Part shown: positions 14,925-55,099 of the stretch, one piece after another | Layout: the number at the start of each line of letters is the position of its first letter | Position numbering within the stretch: the stretch's first letter is position 1 | Assembly: GCA_964057225.1 (NCBI GenBank) | Contig: OZ059896.1 | Coordinates: 10,912,001 to 10,976,000, forward strand | Reading direction: 5' to 3' | DNA length: 64,000 nucleotides | Origin: Auanema rhodensis | Taxonomy: Eukaryota; Animalia; Nematoda | Made by a program: the position numbers and the translations under genes | The notes under the pieces: model-generated | What the model saw: the letters and a program-made list of their open reading frames with translations, nothing else | The model's database searches: none | Told to the model about the DNA's origin: nothing

Positions 14925-17900
14925 TTATACATTCCCAATTATGTTAGCGTGCCTATAATAAATATTTTGATAACTATTATACAAATTCAAATACCATTGC
15001 CGAGCTTGCTTTAACGAATTCGGGGCAATTCCTTCACAGTTTCCAAAAATATCTGTTGTATGTATTTCGTGTATAGGATACCAATCCCTTAAAAATCATA
15101 TTTATAATTATAACCTATAACAATGATGTACCATTTATTTTCCGTTCCGAAAAGCATTACACATATTTTGGTGTCCTTCCGAGGTTTTGATCGACATTCA
15201 GATTTCAAAGTTGAAGGAATATGATCGTCTAGTGAAGCTTGGCTTGGATCAATCACTCTTAAAAAAACTGAATAATCCCGAACACAAAATAAAACTAACC
15301 GTCCGGCTAAACCATGAACCGTAACAATATCATTATGCTGAAAACAGTCTAGATCTTCCTAAAAGATTTATATTAAAACATTATAATGAAGAAATGTAAC
15401 TATACCTTTACTTCAGTCTTAGCTTGTTCTCCTAACCTTGCACTTCGCCTATGAGGTCGAACATCATCCTCCTCAGCAGAAGATTCAGAAGATGGAACAT
15501 CGGCAGGGAGTGGGCTACATAACAATAATAAATTATGTCAACTTTTACGTGTGCATACCTCGTTACATTATTCCTAAACTGCATTAAAGGTGCCGGAACC
15601 TGACGCAAACTTGTTCGTCGCTCTGTACTACCACTAGGTTCAAAGAATTTAGTGATACTCGGCTGCTTGAACGGAGTCCCTTCAGTAGACCCTCTTTTCA
15701 ATTTTTTGTTCTTTTTATTAACAGGCGTTGAACATTTTCGTTTATTATTAGACTTCGACAACTCTAAACTTCCTAAAAATTAAAAATTTCATTGGAAAAA
15801 TTATATTTTCAACAAACCAAAAACAGAAGATTGGCGAGGAGTAACATCTTTAGGGGAAAGGAATGAATTTTTCTTGTCATCTTTAGATACAGGAGTTGAA
15901 GGGGGAGATTTAACTTCTACAGGCTTAGTCTCACTGTAAAATAATATAAATTTAAATGTAAAAGCGGTTGAAACAAACTTTTTAATCTCAATTTTTTCGT
16001 CAAAAGAATTCTTCCTACTGACAGCTTCATCCTCGAGAACCATGCTATCATAAAACATTATGTCCAAAGCTTCCTCCATTAGATTTGAAGACGCATGGAG
16101 CTAAATTAAATCATAAAGATTATTCAAAAAATATGTTGTCTTACCTTTTCAAGCTCATTTACTCGAGTTTCAGTCTCACTTATAATGTGAAAACCGGATT
16201 TACTGAACTTTTTACCATATTTTAAATACCAATCATTTAGGGCATTGAACTTTTGACAATTCTCCATCATTAATTGGAAATCTTGCTTGAAATCCGCGAT
16301 CGTATCTATATATCAAGAAAATAAAATTTGACTTATTTTCCTGAACTAACTGTATTTCCCGTCATTTAGCTTTTTCCTCATTGTGGATAAATCCATGGGT
16401 TTTTTGATAATTGTATTATAACCTTCCACATTGACAGGCTCAGCAAAAACCTAAGTTTATAAATTTTACAGATATTCATATATTTAATCTTACATTCATT
16501 TTATCTTTTCGACGTAACTCATCCAATACGTCTTCCAATATAATATTGAGGGGAATAAGTAGACTCTCCACTATTTCTTGGGAAACACGCAGCTGAAATT
16601 CTTATTCAAAACACTCAAAAATATTAGCTTCATTACATGATTCCTCTTATTAATTTCTCGCTTCTTAATTTGCTCACATAATAATCTTCCCGTTTCTAAA
16701 CCACGCCGCATAATCTGGTATCTAAAAGCAATGCGGGCCATATCCGTATTGATTAAAATGTGTATACTACCTTTGAGCTAAAAGGCGATCCTCGTCGTCA
16801 AGGTCTTCGTGAGAGATTGATACCCGTGAAACTTTTTGAGATATCTAAGCAACAAAGGTATTATCAAAAAATGAAGTAAAGTTTTACCTGAAGACGTTTT
16901 ATAAGTGGAACGCCACAACGTGACTGTCGCTTCATATACCAAAATTGAACTATATCAGTGATATCGATGCTCACTCTTTCAGCTATTCGTTCAACAGCTT
17001 CGAAAGTAATTTTTGGCATACTATAAACAGTATTATAATCTTTCAATTCAGTTATAAGAATACTCACTTGACAGTAGGACCGTTATTGGTCGTTACAGCC
17101 ATGTTTCGTCGTGCATTCCGAATAGCGTCGTCCATTCGCTTCTTACGAGAATTAGCATCACATCCGTCATCATCAGAATGCAAGAGGCAATAAACAAACC
17201 TCTGAAAAATAATGTTCAGAATCAATGCATAATTCAGAATTGTAATACCTGCACGTCCATACCATCAGGATCGTTGGAGTCTGGTTTTGCCTGTACTCTC
17301 ATAGACATTCCAGACTGTTGAGCGCAAGTAACATGAAAAGCTTTGAGACAACTTCTTGTTGAGCATTGCAAACAAGCACCCATTTTCTGCCTTAAATTAA
17401 TACTGTGTTCCTTATTCTCCGAAATTTAACTGTTTCTGAGAAAACAGAAAATATTATAGCTATTGTTTACCTGCAGACTAAACATTTTAACTTAGATCTT
17501 CGCCTCAGAGAGTTGTCAACACCCTCTATTGGTTCGAGAAAAACAGCATTACCAAAATGTACCTAAAAATAGAACATAAAAAACGACGAACTTCTTGACG
17601 CTTACTTCATTGAGCCATATTGCACAGATAACGTGTGCCCAACGACCATCACTAGTTTGCTTGAAAGCTCCTCCTGAGTTCGGACAAAGACAACAGCTCA
17701 CTGGAGTTGAAGGCGAAAGCTTACATCTCCTGCAAAGCCATTGTCCCTCAGGAATGTAAGGAACACCATAACATTCCTGGAAAAAAAAGTTTAAACAAAC
17801 GTTAAACAAACCGAATTAAAAAATTTTAGATACATATTGTTCTATACATACCTGATGAACAGCAATATTGCACATATCACAATAAATAATTTGATTAGCA

Positions 17901-27227: not shown

Positions 27228-29763
27228 TTAAAATGACTCTGATAACTGAGGAACGGAAGCAAACAAGCCAATTGTGGAAAAAAGAATGAAGAAAGTGAAG
27301 ATGAAAAGACATAAACGGTCAATAACCATTGCTGAGAACTTCCAATCATCTTCACAAGTCTTTTCTTCCTCTTTATCGCGTAAATATCCATTTACAGCCT
27401 GGAATCAATTGATTCTAGAATATCTTTTATATTTCTAAGTTCATTCATTTTCAAGTTCATTTGAATTAATAATTCTTTCTACTTCTTTCAAAACTCACAA
27501 TGAGATGAGTATGAATTTGCTGTAATATCAACAACTGTGCTACAAATCCTGGAGATGCCTGAAAATGCAAAATATGTTTTTTCACAAAATTTGATTTGTT
27601 CATCATTTTTTCATAAATATCTAAAAGTTAACCTTTTGACTGTTGCTCTTTGCTAGCTTTGCCTGACGTTTCGACCCGTTTCGCCATAGATGACCTGGAG
27701 CTAAATCGTTAACAACTTCTCCAGTTTCTTCATTTAACTTCATTACTCTGAAAATAAAAATTTTGTACAGATGTTATTGTTGTTTGGTATACCTAGGTGT
27801 GGATACAGGTGAATCAACCAAGATTTTGCACATCAACTCTTGGATACACATACTAGTGTTCTTGGTATGTTGCGATTTTTCTTTTTCAATAACATCATGA
27901 GCAAATTTCATTTCATTCACAGAGCTGTCAGAATCATCATCTTCCTCATCATCAATAACGTCATCTTCACAAGAATCATTGTCAGTATCGTCCTTAGTCA
28001 GTTGTCCTTTTCGAGCAGTATAACCCGGACGATGCATACATAATATCCAAGGCAACCAATTTAACATTATTAGTCGAAACTGGAAAGTTCGAAAATGATT
28101 TTTTCATATAATCGTATTCAATTTTAAATATTTTTCTGAAATACTTTAGTATATACTCACTATATAACTCATTTCATGTGATCGACTGTTGCGATTATGG
28201 AAGTTTAATGCCATAGTTGTGGCTATAACACAGCAAGCACAAGTGAACATACAAACAGCGAAAAACGCTCCTGGATTACAAATAAGTCAGAATATTTCAT
28301 TGTAATTTATACCAAGAAATGGAACAGCTTCTGAAGTAGGAGGAGACATTTCTGCCACGTAATTTTGAAAAATACAAATCGATAACATTATTGTAATCTC
28401 TATAACAAATTTAATATATTTCATAATATTTTTTAAATTATTTAATAATTGTTTCAAATGAAATTTTTATCAAAAAGCTTACGTAATGACATTTTTTCGC
28501 CAGCATCAGGTGGTAATGTAAATCCAATTAAAGTTAGTAATGTAATCAAAATACATGGAAGGATGAGATTGAAAGCTAGAAATATATATATTAAATTTAA
28601 TAATTAAAAACATATATATATATTTTTTTACCATAATATAGTACTCTTCTCCGAATTACAAATGTAAAAATGACGTCGTAATATGGCTCTGGACAGCATT
28701 GGTAATACTGTATATTTCTAACAGCATTAGTTGCTAAAAATTAAATAATAATGATAAAATGAATACAAAGTCATTTTTTTTAAAACATACAAACAAGATG
28801 CCATTCTCCATTCGGCAAATATGTTGACGTATCTAAAGCATTCTCATCAATATCTAATTCAAGTTTAAAGCCATCAAATGTCCAAGAACCAAACTGAAAT
28901 GATTGAATAATAAATAAAGATATAAACATATAATCTATATAATTTAATATTTCTTTAATATTACCTTCATGAAACATTCTTGAATATCAAATGGAAACCA
29001 AACAATTTCAATGCGACATGACAAACGAAATAAACCTAAAACGTAAAAGTAATAATTGAAATAAAAAAACTTATTATAAAACAAATAAGTGAAATTCTGG
29101 CAAATATGTTATAAAAACATTGAAAATAAAATTTTGGTAACGAAAAAACAAAAAAAAACAAGAAAAACCTGGGGGAATCCAGTTAACAGTTCCATCTGGA
29201 TATACAAGAACATTAGAAGCATAAGTTGAATCGAATTGAGGATCTGCACTATTATACATTAATACATCTGGAGTCCATAGTTGACTTTTCCTAAAAATTA
29301 CAGAAAAAACATTAAAGAATAACAAACTTTTGAATTTTATGGATAAACCTAAATCGTAAGTCAGTGACACCTCCATGCTCTTTTGGATTCCATTTTAATG
29401 AATAATCATGCCATGATAGTTTTAACCAAGCATTCACATCTACAACTTGATTTTTTTCATCCTATAATACAATATATTATATAAATATATTATATGTTGT
29501 AAATTATATAATATTTATTAACTTACAACGGTTATTATTTGTTGTAAAGCTATACCAATTTTAACCCGTACTGGCTCAGAAGCATTTTCTACAGGCCTTT
29601 CTAATGGTTCGTAATCTTCAAGCAGCTTGTTATACAGTAAACCTTCTCGAAATGAAGCTTCTACTAAGTTAGATGATAGATTGAGTAGTAAAAGTATAAG
29701 AGCTGTAGAATTGAATATTACATCCAAATAACTGTTTTGACTATTATAAGGGATGATCCACAT
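27228..29763 (-). CDS. Nicotinic acetylcholine receptor alpha subunit, ACR-16/alpha7-like group
   Basis: Signal peptide, [20 protein letters not shown], Cys-loop [15 protein letters not shown], vicinal cysteines [10 protein letters not shown]1-M2 [41 protein letters not shown]4 [14 protein letters not shown]. Confidence 0.95.
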
Positions 29764-40600: not shown

Positions 40601-42680
40601 CTTTCTTTAGTTTTCTTTTCTTTCATCCTTATCTAGAAAGTAAGCAAGACCTGAGATCAGAATGTGGATCACAATGAAAGAAATTGAATTGGTTTATTGA
40701 CATAAAATTATTATTTTTTCTTAAATATGAAATAAAATGAAATAACATACAATATTCTAATACTTAACAATAAACTGTGGCTATTTATCAGTTATAACTG
40801 AAGATATATGAGCATTCCTTCGCTACAAAATTCTGTGAAGTTGGATGTTGCGTCGTTTGTTTGCCCGGTGAAGCTTCTGCTCCTTGCGGTCCATCTTCTA
40901 CACTAGAAAGTGCTGATATGAGGTTGTCTCTGGGTCATACGGGACGCTGAGCAGTTTTTCAAGAACTTTCCAAACGTTTTTTTCTAAATACTTTGAGTTA
41001 AAATTGTAAATATAGCTTAAAATATCTGAAACTACGTATAAGAAAAATGAAAATTTCGAGATAATTTCTTAAAGATTTCTGTGAAGTTTTTATAAGTTTT
41101 GCACATCTGATATAAATAATTCAGGATTGGAATATAGCCTTGGTCGAGTTCCTATAGCCAGTACTGATTTTAGTACCAGAGAGTACAGTTATGCTGAAGT
41201 TCCCGAAGATTTTAATCTAAAAAATTTTACTTTATTGGAAGAAGATTACTTATATAAAGTTTAAAAAAAATAAAACATTTCTTAAAGTTCAATTTCAGAT
41301 TAAATATATTCAAAAAGCGCAAAAGTTAGCCAAAAATGGTATTCGGTTAGTAGCATCACCATGGAGTCCACCGGGTAATATGATTCAAATCAGAAAAAAA
41401 ACTCCTTTTTTTTTCATTTTTAAGCTTGGATGAAAGTAACAAATCGAATGGCAGGAGGTGGGCCTCTCCGAGATGACCTAAGAGTTCATCGTGCTTATGC
41501 CAACTATTTTACTAGGCTAGTTTCATAGGTTTTCAGTTGTTTAAATTCATTTTCTTGTTTGTGTTTGAAATATTATCAATTTTACAGATTTTTTGAAGAA
41601 TATAAGAAGAATGATATTGAATTTTGGGCTGTCACGGTGCAAAATGAGCCAACATCTGGAGCAATTCCAAATTACAAATGGCAAACTTTGTTTTTTACAG
41701 CATCTACTGAAAAGTTAACTTTAATTATAATTGACTTTAAAAACTTGTGATCTTCAGAAATTTCGTGCGTGATTATCTTGGACCAACTATGAAAAGCCAT
41801 GATTTGACTTCAAGCATTGTAATTATCTGTTTGGATGATGACACAATTTGGTTGCCAGCTTGGGCAGACATAGTAAGCTTTATAAAAACTTTTAATTTTG
41901 AAAGTAAAAAAAAACTTTTAGATGTTCGAAGATGATAAAGTAAATAATTATGTCGATGGAATTGGTATACATTGGTATACTAATAATATCTTTACACCCA
42001 ATAGTCTTACTAAGACTCATGAACGTCACCCTGAAAAATTTATTTTGGCAACTGAAGCATGTACTGGATCAAACTTTCCTCATGGACCCATCTTAGGAAA
42101 TTGGTATCGTGCTGAACAATACGCATATGATATTATCACTGTTTATTTGATTTTTGAAATATTCATAAACATAAGATTATTTAGGATTTAAATAATTTCG
42201 TTAGTGGATGGATTGATTGGAATATGTGCTTAGATCTTCTTGGTGGCCCAACTTGGGTGAATAATGTCGTTGATTCTCCAATTATTGTCAACAAAACATC
42301 AGATGAATTCTATAAACAACCAATGTTTTATGCAATGGGACATTTCAGGTTTAATATCAAAATTTGTTTTTTTTTAATAATTAAAATAAATTTATTTGAA
42401 GCAAATTTATAAAACCTGGTTCAAGAAGAATTTCATTACAATTGGAAACTTCTAATAAACAAATATATTCTACGGCAGTTGTTGGACAAAATGGTACAAA
42501 CGAATAATTTAATTTAATTTATTATTATTAATTATAGGTAGAAGAATACTTGTTATTCTTAATCAATCAGATGATAATGAGAAAATATTAATTGAAGATG
42601 TTTTAATTAGAAAATCTGGACTACAATTATTCATTCCTGGACATTCAATAACAACTATTATATGGGATAAACCAATATAA
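37689..42680 (+). CDS. gba: Glucosylceramidase (GH30), paralogue A
   Basis: Signal peptide, [46 protein letters not shown], acid/base QNEP, GIHWY, nucleophile [31 protein letters not shown]. Contains a 2.86-kb intron (38264-41124). Confidence 0.95.
38649..39895 (-). CDS. Myb/SANT-like (MADF/zeste-type) DNA-binding protein with C-terminal coiled coil, nested in the gba-A intron
   Basis: 7 exons in frame: [105 protein letters not shown]. Confidence 0.8.
40190..40505. promoter_or_regulatory. Purine-rich tract with G12 run, likely promoter region of the nested Myb-like gene
   Basis: GA-rich on +, G12 at 40393-40404, 300-600 bp upstream of ATG 39895. Confidence 0.4.
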
Positions 42681-47312: not shown

Positions 47313-48339
47313 TATTATCCTAGGTTTTTAAGATTTAATATTGATAGAACATTGTATTTTGTATTCCAATATTATTCGTTTTGTTTCATTATCAGATTGA
47401 TAAACGATCCCCCCATAATCGAACTGTTACCACTAATAATGTTCAGAAGCAATCTCATAACAGAAATCAAAGAAATTCAATTGTCTACCGTATTTGTGTA
47501 CAATGACATTCGTTATCTATGAGAATTTTAAAAAATAAAATATGATATGGGAATCGGTCAATAAGCTGAAAAATATATTTTAGGTTACCATTATGATCAT
47601 AAATTATTATATATATATATATATAATATATATACAAATTAAATAAATATTTTACATATGTTTGCCTAAATAGCTATATTTGAAATTGTTTTCATCCACG
47701 AGATATTAAGAAGGGAAAAAGAATGTTTTGAGTTCAGTTTCATAAACATAACACATGCCTTTCGTTTACGTTATCTACATAAATTATAAAACTTCGACAC
47801 TAGCATGTCATTAGTGGATTATTGATTTTTCACTAACTCCTTTAACTAAAGGCGCCTTACAGACTTGCGCACGTGACGCTGGTTTATATTTCCTCTTTTC
47901 ATTCTTATTACCACATTATGAATCAGTTGAAACTTTCGCTTATATCTGATTTTTAGTTTTTTAATGTTAATATTGAATAATTGGGTTTAAATTGAATTAA
48001 TCAGTACGCAACAGCTGTTTTCAAAAAAAAAAGAAGAAATACCGTTGACACTTATAAATCAAAATTTTCAAATATTATAACTAGGTAAAATCAATATAAT
48101 ATTTGTTGTATCGTTTCTGTGCAATCCATTGGCATGAAGTTGTACATTTTTTTATTGATTTGCCTCCTATGATACGCTCGCTTCTCCTTTTTTTGCAAAA
48201 TATATTCATTTTAAATATTTATTCGTCTCTTATTTTAATTTTTATTTGACTAAATATTATTGATGTTCATATAATTTGTTTTTTTGATTTTAAGTTTTAG
48301 ATAAGATTTAAGTCGTCTAAATTTAATTTAAAAGAAACT

Positions 48340-51300
48340 ATGCCTGCCATTTCTACTCCATTTGCTGTAGATGGGGAAAGGTACTATTTCTACTTTACTA
48401 TGAGTTTTAATATATGCTTTCAGGGAATATTGGGAAGTTATGGCTGTTATGGATCATCGATTCATCAATGAAACCGAAATTATTTATAACGTGAAGTGGA
48501 AGTTACGTCTTGGTGAAGTTCCAAGTTGGCCTGACTCAGAAAATTGGGTGCAGGAATCTGAAATGGTTCTTGAAACTACCAGTAACTTTATTTTGTTCTT
48601 AAATTTATTTTTGTAGAAGTGTCCTGAATTATTGGAACAATATTGGTTGGAATTTCGTAAAAAACTCAAACCTTTCTTTAGAAAAGATTACACTAGGCGT
48701 GAGGCATTTGACTTATATCTTGCAAGGGTATATCAGCAGAATTTTTTATTTTTTATTTATTACTTGTTTATTTCAGAAAATGAGGCAATGGAGTTGTAGT
48801 CTTTCAAAACAGGACTTAGTAATTATTTAATTATAATTTATCATATATTAATCTATTCTAGGAAGTATGTACTGGTTTGCCTACTATTAATCACGGTGTA
48901 GAGAAAACAGATTTAGTCGAGCAAGTCATAACAGTACCCGCATTTCTTCTTGGCCCAGTTAGGTTTTTTGAATCATTTTGTATAGCGAGAATTTTCATAG
49001 ATTACAATTAAAATCAATTCAAATGAATCTCCTGAACCTCCTGAAATAATAGAAATACTCGATTCTGATGATGAAGTCTTCATACTGTCATAAAAAATAA
49101 TGCTTCATATTTCTTCTACTTTCAGATTCCTCTAAAGCCATCTAACGAAGAAGCTAAGAAATGTAAAGTTGAAATAAAGTCAAGTTTAGAAATAAATGGT
49201 TCGAGCATTAAAAATGATCAAGATTTTGTAAGTTTGTAATTTTAGTTTTGCATCAGCTTATGTTCACTTTGCAGAGTAAAAAAATGAATATTCTAAAGAA
49301 TTATGCCTCAGATTGTAAGTGTCTTAATTATTCTGTATGAATATTTTTCGCTAGTTTTGGGACGAGAGTTCAATCCTGATAATTTACAAAAGAAGTCAGA
49401 GTCTATGTTTTCTATATCAAAGCCAGGTGTTAACAAAGAAAAGAATAATGAAAATGAAAGTAAGCTTATAAACTCGAAAGAAACATTTTATTCTTTTGTT
49501 TTTTAGGTTTGTCACATGCTAAAGCTAACTGTGGCTATGAGGTAGAGGGTATATCGTGTTTAATTTTTGAATATAATTAATTGTAGTCTATTGATGATTA
49601 TGAAGTAGAAGAAATGGAGGATGCACAATGCATTGTAGATTCACGAAAAAAATTAAGTTCCCGAAATCTTCCGAGTTTTTATAGTAATCCCTTTTTGATA
49701 ATGTTGAGGTTGCTATTATTACTTTTATAGCTGTAAAAAGAAAAATAACGCCAGAAGATAAAGAAGATTCTACACATGCACCCATAAACAAAAAGAAAAT
49801 TAATGCGAGCAGTAACTTGTCATTGTCTGCGTCAAAATCGAACATTAGTTCTAATTCTTTATCTCCGGTAATAGTTATTTCATAAATATTATTAATATTC
49901 TACTCTCAGATTCTTCGTCCTAATAATTCAATCAATAAAATCAGCAAGTCGCCTTCTAATATAATTAATCAGTCTGTAACGATCGACTCTAAATCTGTAA
50001 GAATTTAATTTTTTTAAATATATAAATACGAGGGGAAATTCAAGGAAAAGTTATACACACAATTGCTTATCAAGAAATTTGAAGAAGCCAAAGAGGGTAA
50101 ATCACAGGCTCTCCAAAGGGGATATGAGGTGAGTATATCTGAGGTTCTAACAATTTTTACTTTTTTAGGCTATTGATGTGCTGTATATCTTGAGAGAAAG
50201 TATCTCTGGAAAGATGTTTTGCTTAACATTCTTCATGAACCCAGAAAATGACATAGAAAGTTTTTTTGTGCCTATTGATGATGCTATTGCAATGTTTCCT
50301 CTGGTATGTTTACTATATTTTGATTAATTTATGATTTCAATCATTTTCGCTGGTAAATCGTTGCTTAGCACGTTGGAAAGATCCCAAGGTTTGCATTTCG
50401 TCATCTTAATATATCTAAAGTTGCGGATCTGAATTTTATTAGAAGTCTAGTAGTTTTTAACGTATATATAACTCTTTTACATTGTTTTTTATTGTTATTA
50501 TTATTACTATTATTATTATTTCATGTGATATTCTCGTGTACATTCATTATAGTTATAGTTATTCAATTAATTATTGTGCCTTTATTCTAGATTAATGATC
50601 TTGTATATATATATTCTTTTTGAATATTTTAGCCATAGGTTATCAATTTTTTCTTTGCGATAAAAGTTTAAAGATTATACTTATGTTATATACTATACAG
50701 GTCGATCGTTTAATTAATAAAATGCATTTTTTTCATATTTACCACATTTGCCCAAAGCGTTATACATTGCTTAGATATTTTTTGATGTAAGCCATGATGG
50801 TTAGTATCTATTTCTTAATTACAGGGATATTTAGATATTACTTAGTTATAGTGGTCAAGATTGAGCATGTTTTCAGTTTTAACTGAAGTGAGTTTTCATC
50901 TGTAATACAATCTATTTGATTGTTTATAGGCTGAAAAAATTAAAGTTTTGGAAGCCGTTGCTAAACGCAGTAAGTTCAGATGATTGTTTTTAAAAAATAT
51001 ATATTTTTAAGAATACGCCTCCATTGAAGCTGAAAGAGTTAGTAGAGCCGAAAGAAAAAAAAGTCAGCTTGTTGAATTAAAACCGAAATAAAAAACCTAA
51101 ATCGGTATATCTCATCCTTATTTTGTTTAATTTCAGATAAAGAAGGCAAACCGAGGAAGCCTCCTTGTGAGGTATATTATAACATGATAGAACATTTTTT
51201 TTATAAATTGCTTTAGTGTTCTGAGTTTAATAAAAACAACCTACCAAGAACTATACAAATCACTCTGGGAACTGGAATTGAGAGAACCATTGTAACTCGA

Positions 51301-52251
51301 TCTGTGCCGCCAAAAAATCCTCGATATATTCCTCCACCTTTCCCTCTGGGTCATTGTTCCTGTTTTACTAATAACAGTTTGTGCACTCCTAAAATAAAAT
51401 TATGTTTTTTGTTATTCAGGAAGTGATGATGAAGATAGTTCGCCTCCACCTGAAAAGAAAATGTCATTGCAAGAAGCTCGTGAAGAAATTTTAAAGGATG
51501 TGCTTTCTCTCAGTTCTATGGTTAATCAAAATCTTAAAAATTATTATGTTTTACGTTTTCTTATGTAGAACGCTGAACAAACCACTTCAGAAGAGGGAGC
51601 CAAAAGATTTAAAGCAGCTGTAGATAATATTTTAGAATCAGTATATTAATTATATTGTTATTATATTTATATCAGAATTTGCAGAACAATCCGTATCTAC
51701 AGTTATTTGTGGATAAATTCTTAGAAGGAAAGATTAACAGATCGGGCCTTCAAAATGGTCACAAAGTAAATTAGTTTATTCTGCTTATCGTGATCTCATA
51801 ATATTAATTTTAGCCTATTGAAGTTGTTTGTTTTGTAAAGAATAGGAGGACTGAAAAAAAAATGTGCCTCGTTCTTCTTCTTACAAATAAAAATGAATTA
51901 GAAGGCTGCATTACCGAATATGAGGAAATGGTCACATTTTTCCCAGAGGTTTAACGAAAAAATCACAAGTGATTAATATAATTTACATTGTTTTAGGTGG
52001 TGAAACGCTGCTTGAGACGTTGTAGAAGACAAAAAATTTTCAAACCAAGAATAATACCACCCAGGTCACCCTCAACATCTACACCGCCATCATCTTCATC
52101 ATCCTTATCCCCGTCGCCACACTTATCCTCTTCCCCCGCACCATTAGACTCATCGGGCTCACCTACAACTTCGGTCCTACCATCTGCATCTACTTCAGCA
52201 CCGCCACAAACTTTAGCTTCTTCACACACTTCAACCTCATCCGAGGTTTAA
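48340..52251 (+). CDS. HP1-like protein: N-terminal chromodomain plus two chromo-shadow-like modules (possibly two tandem genes)
   Basis: Chromodomain EYWEVMAVMDHRFINETEIIYNVKWK..WPDSENWVQESEMKCPELLEQYW; low-complexity hinge; repeat 1 exons 50045-50128 and 50169-50303; repeat 2 exons 51685-51765 and 51814-51948; Ser/Pro tail. Confidence 0.72.
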
Positions 52252-55099
52252 AGTTTGATACCTGCTCTAACATAGACATCTATTTCCTACTGATCTCATA
52301 ATCTATTTTCTACTGATCTCGGAAATCCGAAACTATCAGTTCAGTTCTGATATTCGTCATTCTGTATCTCCACATATTTCTGCAATTTTTTCTTTTCTTG
52401 TTTCCTACTTTGATGAAAACTTAAAATCATGCGAAACTGTCTATTGTATTATAACTTTATAATAGTTTTTAATGAAAAAACAAGTCAACCAAATTTTTAA
52501 ACTTATATTTTATTTAGAAAGAATAAACACTATTAAATCTATTTTTTCATCTATGAAACTCTTTTAATTGCAATGGCTTTCATGTTCATTAGATATTTGC
52601 ATGATGAAACAATAAAATCGATTTTAAACTATGGATATGTTGACAATGAAAAAGAAACAATCTGTTTTACAACTGATATTATGTGTGTATGTATGTGTTT
52701 GTGTGTCTGTGTACTTTTTTTGTTCCGAAAAAGTTTGTCAGAAAGGAGTGCACTCAGTGTTTTTTTGTTGGGCTGTCCTTCTCAAAAGAACCAATATTAT
52801 ATATTATCACTTCATCAAATAAACAGCGAAAAGTTTTTTTTCCAAAACATTCAATTATTTTACGTCATCATTTTTAATTATCACTCGTTGGTAGTTAATC
52901 AAAAATTGCCACTTGTTGATAATTTAGAAACATTTAAAACTATCAATATTATTTATATTTTTATTTGTTTAACAATTTCAGATTATTCTCTGTTTCAGGG
53001 TTTCATATATATTTGTTTCAGCTGATTTTATCCTGTTTTTTTCCTCGCTGGCCATAATGTCACGAGGCTACTCGTGAAGCTGATTGGCGAGCAATCATTT
53101 CCCTTTCTCTCTGCATCCCTGCTGTTTTCTATTCCTCTTCAATATATATTAGCTCAAAAATCAGGTTTGCAGAAATAGTTATGTAGCTCAGGTTTGAAAG
53201 TGATTTCTTCAAACCATCTTATTTTATTCTCTTATAAATTTCATTTAAACATACTTAAGTTTTTCTCATAGTATATCTTCGGCTCTCTCTCTCTCTCAAT
53301 ACTGCGCTCTTTTTTGTTGCGGCAAGTCCACATCGATAAGCCTTGGTGGCTTGCAGAAAATGTAGTTCAAAGAACGTCCGAAGGGGCGGGTAACCTTTTT
53401 CCTTCTATCTTTTCGTCGCTGCTTCACTTAGTCCGTCCCTCATTCTCATTTTTGTTAGGACTTTTATTTAACATGCTCTTTCACTCTTTTTTATATCCTT
53501 TTTATATTGTATTGTTTATGAAATTTTCTTACGTTTCACTGTTGTATTGGAAAGAACGGATAGATATTCTTACTCATGATAACCTTACGCTATCTCTATC
53601 TTCTATCTATGCGGGAACCTTGTTGGCATTTGGTTCACCTTTTCAATTTGCACGTACAGTCACAACCAATACTATGATTTTTGTACACACGTCGCGCCAG
53701 TTCCATTCAAAATATTGATGATAGATATACTCGTAGACCCCAATTGTTCGCACTTTTTCATTTTTCTATATCTTTCTATTTTCCAGTTCATTAAATCATC
53801 TTTGTGATAAAAACCAATCAGATCAGTTTTCATTATTTTGAAAATATATCAAGTTATTCTTTTAGTGAGATACGATTTACTTTACAAAGACACCACTGGA
53901 AATAGTGACATTTCGCGCTTATTTTCCAAGCAGTCACGCGCATGCCATTTCATTTCAGTCAGAGTCCAAAATTTGAACATTTCCATGTTTCTAGATTATG
54001 GGAACAAAAATTTTTATTTCGACAGATAAAAAACCTGCAGTATCTCAATTTTATATCATTTTATTATTTTAATGTTTAACTTTTCAAGACCTTCATGTTC
54101 ACAATCATATTTTTATTATATGTTATGTTCAATATGTTCTATTATCAGATTGATATGAGTTCTCATGTGGTATCTGTTTGCTTCTTTATTTTACATTCTT
54201 CTTTTGAAACTGTTCGTTCATTCTGACGCCCATATTTTCTCAAACTTTTCTTATCAATAGTTGAAGGTTTAATATTCATGAAAAGTGTTACCTATAACAG
54301 AAAGAGTTTCATCTGTTAATCATTATAAGTAAAGCTAGACGTTCTTTAGAATTTATAGTTCTTGAATAGTGGCAATTGATAAGACTATTTTGTTGTACTA
54401 CTCCCCGTTTCTGTCCATCTGGATCTCTGCATGCTTGGCTGTTATTTCATTTCTTTCTACTATGGTTTTTCACTTCTCTTTAGTCGTCTGTCAATGCCCT
54501 ATTTCTCCTTTTTCTCCAGGATTCACAAATATCTCATTGCTGGCAGAAATAGAAATAACAGAAAGGGCGTTCTTACTGCCTCGTGCAAGTGCATGTGCAT
54601 AGAATAGTCAGCGAGGCCTAGGCATACTGATCATCAGGCCGAATTTTGAACAGCTATAGTCAGTCTGCTACTAATAGTTTGGTTGTTGTCCATCTCTTTC
54701 TTTATATTATTATAAAGTAATATAAGATAGCTTTTGATGAATTAAAACTTTGATAGTTCCATTTTAGACAATTTATATCTCTATAGAACCATTTATTATT
54801 TTCTTTTTTTTTGAACTTAACAATTTTTATAAATTGTATGTTTAGAAAAATTATATACATCCTGTTTATTTTAAGTTTAACTAAGGTGTTTATGTATTTC
54901 GAAGTACGCTCTGAGTACATTTCTCTGATTTTCTTTGCAAACCCTTGTTACTAGATTTATTTCTACTTCATTGTCTTGCATTATTTTCATGAACAATTTT
55001 AAATGATTGTCTGTTAGTTTTTTCTTGTTTCGTTTTTTTTTTAAATTTTAAAATATGTCAACAGATTTTTAGAACCATCATCAAGAAACTGCTTTAAAG

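Follow-up and report, generated by a model that had tools for sequence, protein, structure and literature searches.

Two adjacent transcribed genes, probably an HP1-type gene and a shadow-only paralogue, in the nematode Auanema rhodensis

Introduction

We examined a stretch of 64,000 nucleotides (nt) from the nematode Auanema rhodensis (GenBank assembly GCA_964057225.1, contig OZ059896.1, positions 10,912,001 to 10,976,000 of the forward strand). This stretch is called the window, and all coordinates count from its first nucleotide. Our subject is the locus between positions 48340 and 52251. An initial annotation of the sequence had assigned this interval to one HP1-like protein, with a chromodomain and two chromo shadow domains in tandem. 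We describe instead two neighbouring genes, named gene A and gene B, that lie on the same strand and have separate transcripts. Gene A is probably of the HP1 type and gene B a shadow-only paralogue, and a partial duplication of old date would have given rise to the pair.

HP1 paralogues with only a shadow domain form a class already described. Drosophila and Glossina have them in abundance, and the shadow domain serves there as the diagnostic mark of the HP1 family (PMC6188558). A literature search found no paper on shadow-only HP1 genes of nematodes.

Results

The RNA data were taken from four public runs of a single study, in the form of assembled contigs. Of the words sampled from the window, about half are present in these contigs. 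We placed contigs on positions 47500 to 53400. They skip introns and hence derive from RNA. Around the locus the introns are 40 to 51 nt long, with one exception of 74 nt, and have GT..AG ends. The window is AT-rich, with a GC fraction of about 0.29.

The coding region of gene A runs from 48340 to 50409 on the forward strand. It has 16 exons and encodes 462 residues: a chromodomain, a hinge of about 290 residues and a shadow-like module. The exons are 48340–48380, 48424–48565, 48617–48727, 48777–48818, 48862–48957, 49001–49075, 49126–49227, 49275–49314, 49355–49459, 49507–49541, 49587–49683, 49731–49867, 49910–49996, 50045–50128, 50169–50303 and 50350–50409. Thirteen of the 15 introns are present as joints in the spliced contigs, and the open reading frame is unbroken from the ATG at 48340 to the TAA at 50407–50409. 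All four runs show position 50303, the last of exon 50169–50303, spliced to position 50350, from which 19 residues are encoded before the stop codon. The 3′ untranslated region (50410–50624, forward strand) is represented by unspliced contigs that end at 50578, 50580, 50580 and 50624.

Two details of gene A splicing stand out. The last intron (50304–50349, forward strand, 46 nt) has GT..CG ends, and the joint from 50302/3 to 50349/50 was recovered in each of the four runs. The CG acceptor is non-canonical; the homologous site of gene B has AG. Either this is a genuine non-AG acceptor or there is a base error or strain difference at position 50348. The other detail concerns exon 49001–49075 (forward strand, 75 nt, phase 0), which encodes a motif resembling a SUMO-interaction motif (EIIEILDSDDE). 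Inclusion of this exon is deduced from splice sites and reading frame. In all runs the contigs stop at the donor at 48957 and resume at the acceptor at 49126, and in one run 48929–49152 is covered by an unspliced contig. These breaks, together with the unspliced contig, suggest alternative use of the exon, which may be a cassette exon. At the other end of the transcript, gene A contigs seem to start at an acceptor-like site (ttttaAG/T, where the slash marks the boundary) at 48290–48295.

Gene B is encoded further downstream on the same strand, between 50867 and 52251. Its 10 exons (50867–50887, 50930–50969, 51012–51062, 51137–51171, 51217–51376, 51420–51520, 51569–51640, 51685–51765, 51814–51948 and 51997–52251) specify 316 residues. 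The reading frame of gene B opens with an ATG of its own at 50867; upstream of it, an in-frame TAG can be read in the sequence at 50849–50851. The stop codon is at 52249–52251 and contigs extend to about 52490. A model built from the observed and inferred GT..AG joints matches exactly 389 nt of a contig lying between two placed pieces. The protein ends in a low-complexity tail rich in Ser, Pro and Thr by composition (52057–52248, forward strand), for which no Pfam family was matched. In three runs an unspliced contig of low depth (51033–51166) spans the 74-nt third intron of gene B (51063–51136); this indicates that the intron is retained in some RNA.

The two transcripts are separated by an interval in which no run has an RNA contig. 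This gap (no strand assigned) extends from 50625 to 50822, its right edge being approximate. The gene B contig set begins at about 50823–50824, as calculated from depth per bin. The gap measures about 200–250 nt, and gene B begins about 250 nt past the end of the gene A mRNA. The initial annotation placed the chromodomain and both shadow domains in one chain. This is contradicted by the stop codon at 50407–50409 after the first module, by the two contig sets, by the gap between them and by the separate ATG of gene B. No contig in the four runs connects the chromodomain exons to both repeats, an outcome that the initial annotation had itself named as refuting its reading. As far as the main transcripts go, the one-chain architecture is refuted.

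Part of the earlier description held up fully: the locus does contain two modules with a matching exon structure. Module 1, at the end of gene A (50045–50409, forward strand), is encoded by exons 50045–50128 (84 nt), 50169–50303 (135 nt) and 50350–50409. Module 2, in gene B (51685–52056, forward strand), is encoded by exons 51685–51765 (81 nt), 51814–51948 (135 nt) and roughly the first 60 nt of 51997–52251. For the 84/81-nt and 135/135-nt pairs that had been noted, coordinates and translations match, and the boundaries are seen in, or fit, the spliced contigs. The third homologous exon had gone unnoticed. It gives the last helix of the module (LVNRCLARW in gene A, VVKRCLRRC in gene B) and in gene A it ends with the stop codon. 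Both copies have only phase-0 introns between their module exons. Each module is shadow-like and carries a conserved N-terminal helix (Y.QL...KF.E.K) ahead of the domain. Such a leading helix is not part of canonical shadow domains.

The homology of the modules is firm. As had been stated, the 135-nt exons align without gaps; the alignment has a BLOSUM62 score of 51 with 9 identities, and none of 20,000 shuffles was as good. For the whole 92-residue modules the local score is 128 (shuffles, 24 ± 4; 0 of 5,000 as good). The full gene A and gene B proteins match each other in blastp with an expectation value (E) of 2e-14 over about 150 residues, at 27% identity. Little of this likeness is left in the DNA, where identity is 48% between the 135-nt exons and 62% across the short third exon, and where recognisable likeness is confined to 55 nt around the last intron and third exon. 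At third codon positions the 135-nt exons agree at 14 of 45 sites, and the duplication is therefore old. A tblastn search across the 64-kb window found no further copy of the module.

The N-terminal chromodomain reported for this locus is present in gene A. It occupies residues 15–75 (48425–48661, forward strand), is split by the intron at 48566–48616 and has a 7-residue insertion after KWK. The match to Pfam Chromo is weak (E 7e-4; 19.9 bits, below the cut-off of 25.1) and covers profile positions 1–51 of 53. Other comparisons agree that the domain is HP1-class. The best matches by phmmer to sequences in the PDB are all of this class (CBX5, CBX3, HP1, SUV39H1 and CBX1), and in hhalign it matches chromodomain columns cut from 120 full-length HP1 proteins (88.9% probability, P 2.4e-6). 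The first two positions of the aromatic cage are aromatic (W or Y in EYWEV, and W in KWK). For the third the two alignments differ: phmmer gives Arg, and hhalign gives the Trp after the 7-residue insertion. Methyl-lysine reading by this chromodomain is plausible from its sequence. A 5-residue-word search with gene A residues 1–112 found no relatives.

In gene B, a Pfam search of the exons gave no Chromo match, and the N-terminal part of the protein aligned with nothing when the whole protein was compared with HP1 in hhalign. Gene B would thus fit the shadow-only pattern, having its own transcript and open reading frame, a shadow-like domain and no detected chromodomain; its shadow identity comes from profile and predicted fold.

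We turn now to the nature of the modules, which had been called shadow domains by eye. We consider it quite likely that they are very diverged chromo shadow domains. Both shadow domain and chromodomain columns were cut from the same 120 full-length HP1 proteins. A profile of the two modules matched the shadow domain columns in hhalign with a score of 27.6 and 62.8% probability (P 7.2e-5), over 59 colinear columns. Against the chromodomain columns of these proteins, P was 0.15. When the columns were shuffled, none of 500 two-module comparisons scored above 21.6. Module 1 alone also matched the shadow domain columns (P 0.0012), in the same register as the pair.

Predicted structure points the same way for module 2. 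Its single-sequence AlphaFold model begins with a helix, continues with three strands and closes with two C-terminal helices. The strands and the two helices after them are arranged as in a chromoshadow domain. In Foldseek, the second-ranked match is a 63-residue HP1 chain of the DIM2–HP1 complex (probability 0.96, template modelling score 0.69, E 0.31). When the model was compared with 48,161 representative chains, the top rows were almost all chromo-fold domains, with Z scores of 5–7.3. They include the GEN1 chromodomain (Z 7.3), the HP1 chain 9baq_B (Z 7.0), the chromoshadow domains of HP1alpha and Chp2 (Z 6.4 each), the Rhino chromodomain (Z 5.8) and the Rhino chromoshadow domain (Z 5.4, 1.5 Å). 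Such enrichment for one fold, from a model predicted with no alignment, is hard to obtain by chance. The fold cannot tell a shadow domain from a chromodomain; the profile comparison can.

Several observations count against this assignment. Neither module matched Pfam Chromo_shadow (PF01393), even at E 10 and with single exons and 64-residue cores tried. A shadow domain hidden Markov model (HMM) built from 120 fragments gave about 0 bits on the modules. A phmmer search of PDB sequences with module 1 returned only chance rows for eIF3i. With the untrimmed shadow domain alignment, the hhalign match is colinear over the domain but P rises to 0.007–0.02, and 7 of 400 shuffles did as well. Compared by itself, module 2 aligns in a different register (P 0.063). 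The single-sequence AlphaFold model of module 1 has a predicted local distance difference test (pLDDT) score of 61 and a helix in place of the first strand, and searches with it by Foldseek and VIA-align found no chromo fold. The module 2 model is itself of low confidence (pLDDT 54), and its Z scores are all below 8, a range that the tool calls common. Finally, we considered two residues of HP1beta, Ile161 at the dimer interface and Trp170 in PxVxL binding. At the interface position, in the hhalign register, which is uncertain, gene A has Asn and gene B has Lys. Pairing is therefore not assured. For the PxVxL-binding position, a Trp occurs three residues away in gene A; no Trp is nearby in gene B. 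The original call by eye is thus supported by hhalign and by the module 2 model, but not by Pfam, HMM or PDB sequence matching.

A search of the ESM Atlas for look-alikes of the 135-nt exon gave no usable match. A HMMER search with module 1 against 1.84 billion protein representatives found no true relative. The gene A protein itself was not recovered, so the library apparently does not hold the proteins of this genome. Two proteins returned by this search were rejected as relatives. P0001 (3607 residues, E 2e-13) and P0002 (1210 residues, E 3e-06) are tandem-repeat proteins, with periods of about 80 and about 42 residues respectively, and in each the score sums dozens of stretches of 2–6 bits. 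They illustrate how repeat proteins give false positives in a large profile search.

Elsewhere in the window, three exon-sized open reading frames have recognisable matches. These are a GH30 glycosyl hydrolase (41922–42188, forward strand, E 1e-16), a PHD-like zinc finger (17552–17809, reverse strand, E 3e-13) and a neurotransmitter-gated ion-channel ligand-binding domain (29077–29376, reverse strand, E 6e-11). By sequence, the locus has ordinary animal genes near it.

Discussion

One alternative to a pair of separate genes starts from how close these genes are. They share a strand and lie about 250 nt apart. Moreover, exon 50169–50303 ends, and gene B exon 50930–50969 begins, in phase 0; splicing 50303 to 50930 would hence preserve the reading frame. 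A single gene spanning 48340–52251 could then still place one chromodomain and two shadow-like domains in one chain, at least as a minor read-through isoform. Ten joints, namely seven introns of gene B and three joints around the probable cassette exon of gene A, are accounted for but were not directly seen, which leaves some room for such a product. In addition, the RNA evidence consists of assembled contigs of one study, and contigs can lose rare isoforms; this weighs against our reading of the locus. Yet the contigs of all four runs cross the donor at 50303 and the acceptor at 50930 unbranched, with 50887 joined to 50930. Therefore no alternative joint was kept at either site in these assemblies, and a 50303-to-50930 joint is absent from the contigs of the four runs. 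The module 1 exon leads instead into a stop codon and a 3′ untranslated region, no RNA crosses 50625 to about 50822, and the fusion would drop the last helix of module 1. We give this explanation very little credence. Scarcely more credible is the idea of gene B as a partial duplicate in decay, still transcribed but a pseudogene with no protein function. It is true that gene B has no chromodomain, that its module is further from shadow domains than that of gene A and that it ends in a low-complexity tail. Against this, it keeps an intact frame of 316 codons across 10 correctly spliced exons with canonical GT..AG introns, and it is found in all four RNA runs. The duplication is old, and a copy under no constraint would not have remained open for so long.

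A more serious competitor concerns the origin of the domain. The module might be a lineage-specific domain of other descent with a small beta-alpha shape, in which case the chromodomain protein of gene A would not belong to the HP1 family, and gene B would encode an unrelated partner. The failure of Pfam, HMM and PDB sequence searches would be expected, as would the empty search of 1.84 billion representatives, the low-confidence models with Z below 8 and the conserved leading helix, which canonical shadow domains do not have. What such a domain would not explain is a profile match specific to shadow domain columns (P 7.2e-5 versus 0.15; 0 of 500 shuffles), fold matches dominated by chromo and chromoshadow domains, and a C-terminal position in a chromodomain protein, as in HP1. 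We regard a different origin as unlikely.

The picture that we favour is a partial duplication, long ago, that would have left gene A and gene B as neighbours on one strand. The gene A product would be a strongly diverged HP1-type protein, with its chromodomain at the N-terminus, a hinge of about 290 residues and a chromo-shadow-like domain at the C-terminal end. It may act as a chromatin reader and adaptor, the chromodomain sitting on a histone tail and the shadow-like domain pairing or binding partners. The predicted gene B product, of 316 residues, would have no chromodomain, a single copy of the shadow-like domain of gene A and a Ser/Pro-rich tail. It might act like the shadow-only HP1 paralogues of flies, pairing with itself, with the gene A protein or with others, and would have no histone reading of its own.

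Both proteins can be set beside known members of the family. Like canonical HP1 (human CBX1, CBX3 and CBX5, Drosophila HP1a, and C. elegans HPL-1 and HPL-2), gene A combines an N-terminal HP1-class chromodomain, a hinge and a terminal shadow-like domain. It is much longer, with 462 residues and a hinge of about 290, whereas canonical HP1 has about 180–200 residues in all. Unlike canonical HP1, it has a chromodomain with a 7-residue insertion that falls below the Pfam cut-off, and a shadow-like domain that is invisible to Pfam and has an extra leading helix. Fast-evolving germline HP1 proteins such as Rhino (HP1D) resemble the modules in the strong divergence of the shadow domain, and Rhino domains are among the matches of the module 2 model. 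This likeness is one of sequence divergence and predicted fold; the RNA runs used here are of unstated tissue. In Diptera, HP1 turnover has been linked to fast-evolving heterochromatin. The closest parallel to gene B is with the Dipteran shadow-only paralogues (Umbrea/HP6 and HP1.Gm5csd-7csd; PMC6188558), which likewise have the shadow domain only, are duplicates of an HP1-like gene and are strongly diverged. Unlike them, gene B belongs to a nematode and is the immediate downstream neighbour, on one strand, of its full-length relative. It also differs in its length of 316 residues, its unrelated N-terminal sequence and its Ser/Pro-rich tail, and its shadow identity derives from profile and fold only.

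The arrangement of the genes raises a further possibility. The two might be co-transcribed as an operon-like pair whose shadow-like domains form an obligate heterodimer. The only hints of an operon are that the genes share a strand, that the gap measures about 200–250 nt and that gene B contigs open at an acceptor-like site (ttaattacAG/G, with the exon from 50825). Acceptor-like starts of the contigs of both genes would fit spliced-leader trans-splicing. No spliced-leader sequence was seen on the contigs, and Rfam and tRNA scans of the window found nothing, so that there is no spliced-leader gene nearby. We think an operon encoding an obligate heterodimer improbable; a rare in-frame read-through fusion from 50303 to 50930 is less likely still, its probability being very slight. 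If the heterodimer did exist, it would be a two-gene version of the pseudo-dimer first proposed for two shadow domains in one chain. It would offer an asymmetric groove for partner binding, beyond what symmetric HP1 dimers provide.

On the reading of two separate genes, the locus is a fast-diverged HP1-family pair, consisting of a full-length member with an unusually long hinge and a shadow-only paralogue. It belongs to a known family and is no new kind of system. The pair would help annotation and comparative studies of heterochromatin readers.

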